DNA of 17,181 bases, taken from positions 1 to 17,181 of the forward strand of contig BAAFSQ010000215.1 of assembly GCA_054661495.1 (NCBI GenBank), read 5' to 3'. The DNA is from Zygophlyctis sp. KS116. Taxonomy: Eukaryota > Fungi > Chytridiomycota. Position numbers and translations under genes: made by a program. The notes under the pieces were generated by a model. It saw nothing but the letters and a program-made list of their open reading frames with translations, was not told the origin of the DNA and ran no database searches. How positions within the stretch are numbered: the stretch's first letter is position 1; every line of letters starts with the position of its first letter. Positions 5,591-7,882 of this stretch are shown here, piece after piece.

Positions 5591-6788
5591 TTAATTATTT
5601 GATACATGACCATACACTCGTAGTCTAGATATACCTCCGTCAGGAAAAATTGTCAATTTGACTTGAGAAACTTTCCGAGAAGCAGACACATCAAAAGAAT
5701 CTGATGAATGTGGCGATAATTTAGCTCTTGGAACCAAGACAATCCATTGGCTATTTGGATTATGTATCAGCCCTTCCAACTGACAAGATTCAGGATAATT
5801 TCCCTTGAAATGATGAGTCTAAACGATTAGTTTGAATCCTTATTTACCTCAATTTCAATTTCGGTGACTATTCCTTCATGACCCAATTTAATAACAGTAT
5901 TCTCAGATCCAGGAATAATTAAATGACCATCAGCTCCATATTCATATGATTTTGGACGGTTAATATTTCTCGCGGTCTCCCATCCATCAAACATTCCTTC
6001 ATTTTTAAAACTTAATAGCGTACCTTTAGAAGGATCTCTTGAAAGAAGATTCATAGGTTGACCATAATGTGCATTTGAACAAGAAATAGCTCTTCCTCCA
6101 TTTTCTAAACATGCAAGATCCAAAATATCTGTATTTGAAACTTTTGTCCAATCTTTTTGCACACTTCCAAAAACTCGCAACCTTGAATAAGCCAGCTTAG
6201 ATATACCTTGCAATACCTCCATCCGGATGCATATTAACCTTTAGATGCGTTACTCTTCCGCTATAGATTGAAGCAAAATTATTTAATCTAGTATCTGGAT
6301 ATCCTGGTTCTAGTTTTGTAACTGGTAGAATCATTTCCCAAGAAGAAGTTAAAGACTCTACTTTAGCAATTTCATCTAAAGAAGCACACGTTCCCATTTC
6401 AGATTTTCTGTTAAAATCAACTTCTTCTGATAAACTAGTCCCTTGTATAGAAATAAAGGGAACATGATTTCCTGTGAAAAAGGCCGTATCAATCTCAAAC
6501 CCGCAAACGTTACCAGCAAGTCCCAATTTTATAATACAAAAATCATGACCTTGAATTCTTTTCCTTCTAGTTTCCCATCCATCCATTTCCTTTCCTATTA
6601 TAAGTCTTACAAACCGTACCGAATTCTGTATACGTAAAAGGATCAAACACTGGAGCCTTGTATGAAATCATATTTTCTATTGTTAGTCTACATAATTTAC
6701 CAGCAACAGCAAAAAAGTCATCAGTTGCAAACAGTATTCTACCGCCATTTGAGTCCAGAGCAAGATCAGGAAACTCTTTAAAAGACAT
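5591..6788 (-). CDS. DAL2: Allantoicase (purine catabolism)
   Basis: [65 protein letters not shown] (two allantoicase repeats). Introns 6677-6700 (24), 6595-6619 (25), 6182-6206 (25), 5997-6023 (27), 5819-5847 (29). Confidence 0.95.
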
Positions 6789-6789
6789 T

Positions 6790-7415
6790 TTATACTGGTT
6801 GTTTATTAAAAAATTTTCCTATTAAAGTAGATGATGGATCGATTTCTTTTGCATCATCTTTAAAAGATGTACCATAAAAGAATGCATGAGAGTCTTGAAA
6901 TATCCCAATCGCTCCTGATCCCAGAATACTTATAAATAGTGCTTTTTTTATATATGATCTAGGAAATTTATCTACACGATTGAATATATAATCTTCTTAC
7001 AATAGAAAGAAATAGCAGTAGACGCTAAAATACCTCCAACAATTGGATGAAACCATTGTTCACGTCCATTATAGATATCTAGACTAGTTTCTCCAATTAA
7101 TAAAAGAGAAATAATTGATGCAAACTTGAATCCATGCAATACTCCTTTTTCTACTCCTGCTCTTACAATCGCATTTGTTCTTGCCCTTTGAAAGTTTACA
7201 AACCCACCTTTAGTTTGTGGCAATTTGTTTGAATTTTCAGCCAAGAATGAAGCACCTCTGAGAGATCCTTCTCTGTATGCTCCCATTAAAAGACCAGTCA
7301 GAAATCCAGTTCTTATAACATCAGCAGAATAACGGGAAGTTGGAGTTAGATCTGATGATCCATAAGGAGGAAATATTAGAAATTGAGCAAATGAAATTGG
7401 CCACTGATAGTCCAT
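6790..7415 (-). CDS. Tim17/Tim22/Tim23-superfamily (TIMMDC1-like) mitochondrial membrane protein
   Basis: ATG at 7415 (MDYQW). Gly-rich TM helices ([28 protein letters not shown]) and FLAEN..KLP.T.GG. The 29-nt intron 6972-7000 opens a last exon [26 protein letters not shown]...FNKQPV* ending at TAA 6792-6790. Confidence 0.7.
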
Positions 7416-7490
7416 TCCGATATTTCTAAAATTCAAGGTATATCAAGAGATTTCACTTTTCAAATCTCCTGATCCTGACTCCAAACTCTA

Positions 7491-7882
7491 ATGATCTCAA
7501 CTCATGTCTTGGACACAAACAAGGGAATACCAGGCCAAGGAATCCCTGTACAACTCCTGCAGTACGTACCAGACACAAGTCAATGGATAGTTTTGGGAAA
7601 CTCAAGAACTGATAATGATGGTATAAATTTAAAAATATTAAAGACTAGGAAGATGTAAGGATTTAGTGAGTCCTTCTAGTACTATACAAGAGAATAGTAA
7701 ATGTAAATTAATTTTCCAATTATCAGAATACTTTGAAAACCAAGGAATAAAACCATTTTTTCCAGGTAAATCCAATAACTTAAATAGTAGAGGCTCAACT
7801 TATTTTTATAGTTGAAAAAGGACATTATCATGTTCCTCTACTTTTGTCTCCACACAGTTTTACAACGTACCGAGGATCATGA
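7491..7882 (+). CDS. uraH: 5-hydroxyisourate hydrolase (transthyretin-like protein; missed by ORF track)
   Basis: MISTHVLDTNKGIPG...TDNDGRC...YF...FFPEAQLIF...HYHVPLLLSPHSFTTYRGS*, with the diagnostic STHVLD, DGR, HYHVPLLLSP and terminal YRGS. Introns 7621-7648 (28) and 7766-7790 (25). Confidence 0.96.

Follow-up and report, generated by a model that had tools for sequence, protein, structure and literature searches.

Linkage of purine-catabolic genes in fungi has been described for the DAL cluster of Saccharomyces (Wong and Wolfe 2005, as reviewed in PMC13751858), where gene order is reported to influence expression in yeast. The locus considered here resembles DAL in that purine and allantoin genes, allantoicase and ureidoglycolate lyase among them, are linked in a fungus; however, DAL, as outlined in that review, is a single block of six genes in yeasts that have lost uricase, whereas in the chytrid genome studied here the catabolic pathway from urate is complete, and the linkage consists of two separate pairs, including uricase and HIU hydrolase, with partners that vary between lineages and with an unrelated gene inside. 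A further arrangement, the allantoicase–lyase fusion of Cryptococcus, has been called specific to Basidiomycota; allantoicase is named first in it, and the lyase is present in two copies (PMC3646786). The chytrid Gorgonomyces likewise joins allantoicase to the next enzyme, but with one lyase in the N-terminal position, whereas the window itself contains no fusion.

Tight gene spacing also has described parallels. As in the bicistronic loci of green algae (PMC7896298, PMC11892635), an upstream ORF of about 600 nt and a very short gap form part of a conserved gene pair; however, the algal bicistrons are depleted of AUG before ORF 2, which is reached by leaky scanning, whereas the upstream ORF of the window has an ATG count typical of its genome and the locus is known from DNA alone. 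In compact microsporidia, mono- and multigene transcripts coexist, and start sites can lie 1–4 nt upstream of the AUG (PMC2803860). The likeness to microsporidia consists in gaps too small for control elements, with signals shifted into neighboring genes, and in the enrichment of AAATTT upstream of start codons, which was also detected in the genome studied here; the difference is that a 2.9-Mb intracellular parasite is being compared with a 12.7-Mb intron-rich chytrid, for which the evidence is likewise genomic.

Gene models and junctions of the locus

The window, i.e., the whole stretch of DNA analyzed (17,181 nt), is one entire contig of a 12.7-Mb assembly of 1175 contigs, and the locus was recovered in DNA contigs from several lake samples (freshwater metagenomes). 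The source genome is that of a hyper-compact, intron-rich chytrid: a gene finder self-trained on 262 kb of it, on which the background spacing statistics rest, returned 155 models with a gene span of 84% and intron lengths peaking at 24–30 nt. Spliced gene models were searched exon by exon, and joined translations were used for frame checks, ATG counts and the training of the gene finder. The best named matches of the allantoicase family include Boothiomyces, Rhizoclosmatium and Globomyces, and these matches, together with velvet genes close by, mark the source as a chytrid. The Rfam search of the window revealed zero RNA genes, and a sigma-70 scan of the window, which is not meaningful for this host, gave chance levels.

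The predicted HIU hydrolase (112 aa; 7491..7882, plus strand; introns 7621-7648 and 7766-7790) has the PF00576 fold and all of the STH, GRC and YHV motifs (N-terminal His, Arg and His) as well as the C-terminal YRGS, and carries no PTS2 leader. Its 3' end was mis-modeled by the gene finder, overlaps being forbidden; the stop of the flanking gene for a Sen54-like tRNA-splicing endonuclease subunit (7877..8383, minus strand), which is kept as a neighbor in the relative L031, overlaps the final 6 nt of HIU hydrolase. The start codons of HIU hydrolase (7491, plus strand) and of the Tim17-like gene (7415, minus strand) are 75 nt apart, in agreement with the coordinates given in the original prediction, and the divergent spacer between them (7416..7490) is a candidate bidirectional promoter in which no common motif was detected.

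The gene of the Tim17-family membrane protein (TIMMDC1/Tim22/T17lp1-like, 198 aa; 6790..7415, minus strand) was assigned by a weak PF02466 match, by homologues, and by sequence and fold matches. It runs from ATG 7415 to TAA 6792-6790 and contains a single 29-nt GT–AG intron (7000-6972). Exon 2 is matched by the intronless homologues P0002 and P0003, of which P0002 begins at the same Met, and these homologues rule out the intron as an artefact. AATAAA (6802..6807, minus strand), which is located where the relative L005 has its stop codon, is tentatively regarded as a possible poly(A) signal for the mRNA of the Tim17-like gene; TAA stops contribute artificially to the genomic peak of AATAAA at stop codons.

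A single base (6789, minus strand) separates the TAA of the Tim17-like gene from the ATG of allantoicase (355 aa, six exons; 5591..6788, minus strand). This gap after the spliced Tim17-like gene, also part of the original prediction, was reproduced on the sequence and in the gene-finder models, and its length and frame are not kept in relatives. Allantoicase was recognized by PF03561 on three exon stretches, by the gene-finder model and by an N-terminus as in relatives; its two PF03561 repeats carry the DGWET-R and PDGG-R motifs, and ATG 6788 is the sole ATG within its open frame. The five introns are 24–29 nt long (6677-6700, 6595-6619, 6182-6206, 5997-6023 and 5819-5847), and the models of both allantoicase and the Tim17-like gene were reproduced by the self-trained gene finder. 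Intron 5997-6023 (27 nt) is in-frame and stop-free; if it were retained, the protein would gain nine residues ahead of the second repeat motif. A 347-nt allantoicase fragment (window 5936-6282) recurs with 95% identity on contig C48 (L006:5813-6159) beside a short tandem repeat, and this partial duplicate was also seen in run X3. At the other end, a C2H2 zinc-finger gene (4484..5569, plus strand), which we take to be SFP1-like, ends 21 nt from the allantoicase stop and is a neighbor in L031 and L032 too. Velvet-domain genes flank the locus on both sides (window 3198-4000 and 10614-11710).

Linkage of purine genes in relatives and within the genome

Synteny of the genes in related genomes had been proposed as a check, and linkage of HIU hydrolase and allantoicase was indeed found in uncultured relatives and in Boothiomyces. 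The order HIU hydrolase, Tim17-like gene, allantoicase recurs in L031, at 40% protein identity, in L032, at 33%, and in the P0005 contig, and the Tim17-like/allantoicase pair is visible in L005; in the tree of Tim17-like proteins, these relatives group together with support (97/93). A metagenome scan with the Tim17-like alignment gave zero confirmed loci. Since unrelated flanking genes are as conserved within this clade as the trio, the within-clade conservation, taken alone, is microsynteny. The 75-nt divergent spacer is not fixed in length: a strain with 96% identity (L004) has 102 nt instead, and in relatives, the spacer ranges from 7 to about 88 nt. The L004 spacer is 27 nt longer than that of the window, and the added DNA holds a short inverted repeat.

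In the cultured Boothiomyces macroporosus, HIU hydrolase and allantoicase are placed head-to-head at a distance of 69 nt, with the Tim17-like gene absent between them. The HIU hydrolase of this species (L039:9528-9931) is unannotated and has a PTS2-like leader, which is missing in the clade of the window. The Boothiomyces locus also shares MRT4 and a NIPA-like gene with that of the window; since these genes and the flanks within the clade are conserved alongside, simple microsynteny accounts for some of the conservation. In Rhizoclosmatium globosum, allantoicase is head-to-head with ureidoglycolate lyase (43 nt), and in Gorgonomyces haynaldii, the two enzymes are joined in one ORF (L033:10943-12654) with ureidoglycolate lyase as the N-terminal part; the annotated allantoicase of the latter species is truncated, the frame being open from 10943. 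This ORF lies 2.3 kb downstream of the Gorgonomyces Tim17-like gene, and HIU hydrolase was not found within the 16.6 kb examined. Two velvet genes follow right after the Gorgonomyces allantoicase. Purine genes were not found near the Tim17-like gene of Globomyces. Consequently, the immediate partner of allantoicase was purine-catabolic in all three cultured genomes, with two different partners and with other neighbors that differ, the three loci compared being a small and phylogenetically non-independent sample.

The source genome itself contains a second pair: on contig C156 (L007:4458-6084), the genes of uricase and ureidoglycolate lyase face each other head-to-head across 73 nt, and the same arrangement occurs in two relatives with spacers of 7 and 59 nt. 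The uricase ends in a PTS1-like AKL. The uricase/lyase pair is kept in L035-L038 with a Lag1 ceramide-synthase neighbor; the Lag1 ceramide-synthase genes at L007:2029-4441 are tandem duplicates whose 5' halves are identical and whose 3' ends have diverged. Three divergent spacers of purine genes (L007, window 7416-7490 and L011) are near-equal in length (73, 75 and 76 nt), and a motif common to them was not found.

The chance of one further adjacent pathway pair was roughly estimated at 0.007–0.015, given about 7,500 genes (extrapolated from the 262-kb gene models) and the eight pathway genes remaining after HIU hydrolase and allantoicase. Thus, the linkage of HIU hydrolase and allantoicase exceeds chance, being conserved and accompanied by a second independent pair, and non-homologous pathway genes are linked beyond chance, as in DAL, in two pairs here and in three cultured genomes. 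One main block of the DAL kind was not observed: the ten pathway genes are spread over eight contigs, with a separate contig each for guanine deaminase, xanthine dehydrogenase, OHCU decarboxylase, a PuuE-type allantoinase candidate, urease and malate synthase.

The pathway genes may be held in head-to-head pairs by selection, either for being regulated together or for being inherited together; alternatively, the pairs may be differing remnants of an older cluster that was broken up. A somewhat unlikely explanation is inherited microsynteny, according to which ancestral neighbors have undergone local shuffling and compaction, every gene is driven by a promoter of its own, and their membership in one pathway is a coincidence. 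The Sen54-like, zinc-finger, velvet, MRT4 and NIPA-like flanks conserved alongside are consistent with it, as are the dispersal of the majority of pathway genes and the failure of the search for a common regulatory motif: in the upstream regions of seven purine genes, the best motif was no better than 21% of random gene sets and UaY-type sites were not found, and HGATAR was absent within 150 nt upstream of allantoicase. However, the purine partners of allantoicase, two kinds of them amid differing neighbors in the cultured genomes, and the independent uricase/lyase pair argue against an incidental link. Co-regulation of the paired purine genes is suggested by their repeated pairing.

The membrane protein between the enzymes

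The Tim17 family includes TIMMDC1, Tim22, T17lp1, which is an uncharacterized fungal group, and Pmp24, which shares the Pfam family with Tim17 and whose subgroup has an extra C-terminal membrane helix (PMC5072337). The window protein is similar to these proteins in its four-helix Tim17 fold and belongs to a fungal Tim17-family group of 98 representatives; it differs in that its profile match is under the Pfam cut-off, and a link of the family to purine metabolism is not described in the literature examined. The PF02466 match was found in 15 of the 16 aligned homologues, in all cases below the cut-off, and the structure model (pLDDT 94) consists of four long helices, so that the assignment combines the four-helix fold with a sub-threshold profile. 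The TIMMDC1 and Tim22 clusters were top-ranked in Atlas, the sequence (PDB) and fold searches gave Tim17, Tim22 and NDUFA11, and the best fold match of the model was Tim17 (8e1m_A, E 4.6e-3). The Pmp24 subgroup was rejected, as the model lacks the extra C-terminal membrane helix and the closest similarity is not to Pmp24, in a comparison based on the model and on similarity.

It was previously proposed that the sandwiched membrane protein may be functionally linked to the enzymes, and this proposal was not supported: the protein appears mitochondrial, and its gene is missing where allantoicase is located in Boothiomyces and Rhizoclosmatium. A role in the pathway, such as that of a Pmp24-like channel carrying urate or allantoin across the peroxisomal membrane, is very improbable. 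Such a role would accord with the Pfam family shared with Pmp24 (PMC5072337), with the PTS1-like end of uricase and with the failure to find an NCS2 xanthine/urate permease (PF00860) in the assembly, possibly because the assembly is incomplete or the exons are too short; it is opposed by the mitochondrial best matches (TIMMDC1, Tim22, Tim17 and NDUFA11), by the four-helix model and by the gene being unlinked to purine genes in Globomyces, Boothiomyces and Rhizoclosmatium. Most likely, to judge by the similarities and the model, the Tim17-like protein resides in the mitochondrial inner membrane and its gene is a passenger at the locus.

Transcription of allantoicase and significance of the pairs

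The short distances at the locus are not special for this genome, because comparable divergent and tandem gaps are common between unrelated genes. Twelve of the 36 other divergent spacers in the sampled 262 kb are ≤75 nt, and spacers as short as 19–24 nt are present, 19 nt being the minimum in the sample. Tandem gaps of ≤15 nt, with unrelated partner genes, account for 7 of 72 in the sample (~10%), a share that is a lower bound because the gene finder forbids overlaps, and for 2 of 49 in two contigs taken without selection. The lengths of tandem gaps are two-humped in appearance (8 at ≤15 nt, 1 at 16–36 nt and 14 at 37–75 nt). The stop of TANGO2 is followed 1 nt later by the start of the unrelated OHCU decarboxylase gene (C21, L009:5058-5064). 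It should be noted that both 1-nt gaps in the sample precede purine enzymes, i.e., allantoicase and OHCU decarboxylase, and that both loci were picked for those genes.

The original prediction had proposed, from the absence of intergenic promoter space, that allantoicase may be a second cistron. This argument fails, since relatives must hold promoters within coding DNA: divergent genes 7 nt apart cannot share one mRNA. Besides these pairs, the gap length is unconserved and AUG is not depleted. The gap between the Tim17-like gene and allantoicase is 1 nt in the window and in L004, 4 nt in L031, 14 nt in L032 and 33 nt in L005, and the relative frame of the two ORFs differs among relatives. Fixed stop-start coupling was rejected on these gaps, all of which are short and compatible with loose reinitiation, and a read-through or frameshift fusion was rejected because the relative frame is not conserved. 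The Tim17-like ORF contains 11 internal ATGs, which equals the genome median, with 10 of them out of frame in 597 nt, where 9.8 per 600 nt is the median for the genome, and the L032 ORF contains 14; with no AUG depletion before ORF 2, a leaky-scanning bicistron is very unlikely. Synonymous conservation in the last exon of the Tim17-like gene was not raised, a low-power comparison that gave no mark of an internal promoter.

The operon reading is thus weak. According to it, the spacer promoter would yield the mRNA of HIU hydrolase as well as a bicistronic mRNA of the Tim17-like gene and allantoicase, on which allantoicase would be translated by termination-reinitiation; the insertion of the Tim17-like gene into an ancestral head-to-head pair would have left allantoicase dependent on the shared promoter. 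We regard this arrangement as unlikely. The gap of ≤33 nt in all four lineages, the direct HIU hydrolase/allantoicase pair of Boothiomyces, the seemingly two-humped tandem gaps and the OHCU decarboxylase start, likewise 1 nt past an unrelated upstream stop, speak for it, as does the length of the upstream ORF, about 600 nt, which is the median of algal bicistrons (PMC7896298); moreover, reinitiation on bicistrons is reported to be inducible in yeast (PMC11952965). Against it are the 11 internal ATGs, in contrast to the AUG-depleted algal bicistrons (PMC11892635), a gap whose length and frame vary, in contrast to fixed viral stop-start motifs, the promoters that must exist within coding DNA in this lineage, and Gorgonomyces, where other DNA separates the Tim17-like gene from allantoicase. 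It is decidedly unlikely that the genome-wide class of abutting pairs (about one-tenth of tandem junctions) represents true bicistrons expressed by termination-reinitiation after full-length ORFs, in which case the Tim17-like gene would have entered the ancestral bidirectional promoter of HIU hydrolase and allantoicase and allantoicase, as a second cistron, would have retained its pathway regulation.

A polycistronic precursor from which trans-splicing or coupled cleavage would release the individual mRNAs, in the style of nematode operons, is exceedingly improbable: the tight same-strand spacing is all that favors it, whereas a 1-nt gap is too small to accommodate, on the same molecule, both a poly(A) site behind the first ORF and an acceptor ahead of the second. 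To our knowledge, no spliced leader is known in fungi.

We give about an even chance to the explanation that the locus is a mini-cluster for purine catabolism, set in the hyper-compact genome of a chytrid, whose genes, as far as the gene models and comparisons suggest, would be made as separate, overlapping mRNAs. The spacer 7416-7490 would drive HIU hydrolase and the Tim17-like gene, whereas allantoicase would be transcribed with a very short leader from its own start inside the last exon of the Tim17-like gene, and the Tim17-like mRNA would terminate at or within the allantoicase start. Signals overlapping coding DNA may thereby lock the Tim17-like passenger in place. The 1-nt gap probably arose through a small deletion near the old stop, which would have extended the Tim17-like frame through a spacer of about 30 nt to the first stop, falling in the A-rich start context of allantoicase. 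In comparison with L005, the only pair compared, the window apparently lacks four bases at the old stop, and its TAA now falls within the start context, A-rich as is usual in this genome. The explanation by separate mRNAs is supported by the floating stop, the short gaps between unrelated genes, the 7-nt divergent spacers, the genome-typical ATG count, the mitochondrial affinity of the middle gene and the precedent of the microsporidian transcripts, and the mini-cluster by the differently partnered head-to-head pairs in Boothiomyces, Rhizoclosmatium and this genome and by the Gorgonomyces fusion. The absence of a motif, the equal conservation of the flanks, the fact that the pairs in this genome are not consecutive steps and the location of six other pathway genes on separate contigs count against a mini-cluster.

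Thus, the partner-swapping purine pairs are a real finding, wider than the original prediction, in which the claim of an operon is to be downgraded. Chytrid purine pairs were not described in the papers found in our literature search, whose coverage is incomplete. Purine clustering in fungi is usually told as a single recent event in yeasts and one basidiomycete fusion, whereas chytrids appear to be under the same pressure, with partner-swapping pairs, a further fusion and genes overlooked by annotation. The chytrid pairs offer a natural series in which the causes of pathway clustering can be studied, and pairs of non-consecutive steps do not fit the idea of a toxic intermediate. The locus is also a good site for testing gene expression in a free, intron-rich fungus with almost no intergenic DNA, and the cultured relatives make both questions, i.e., clustering and expression in a compact genome, testable.
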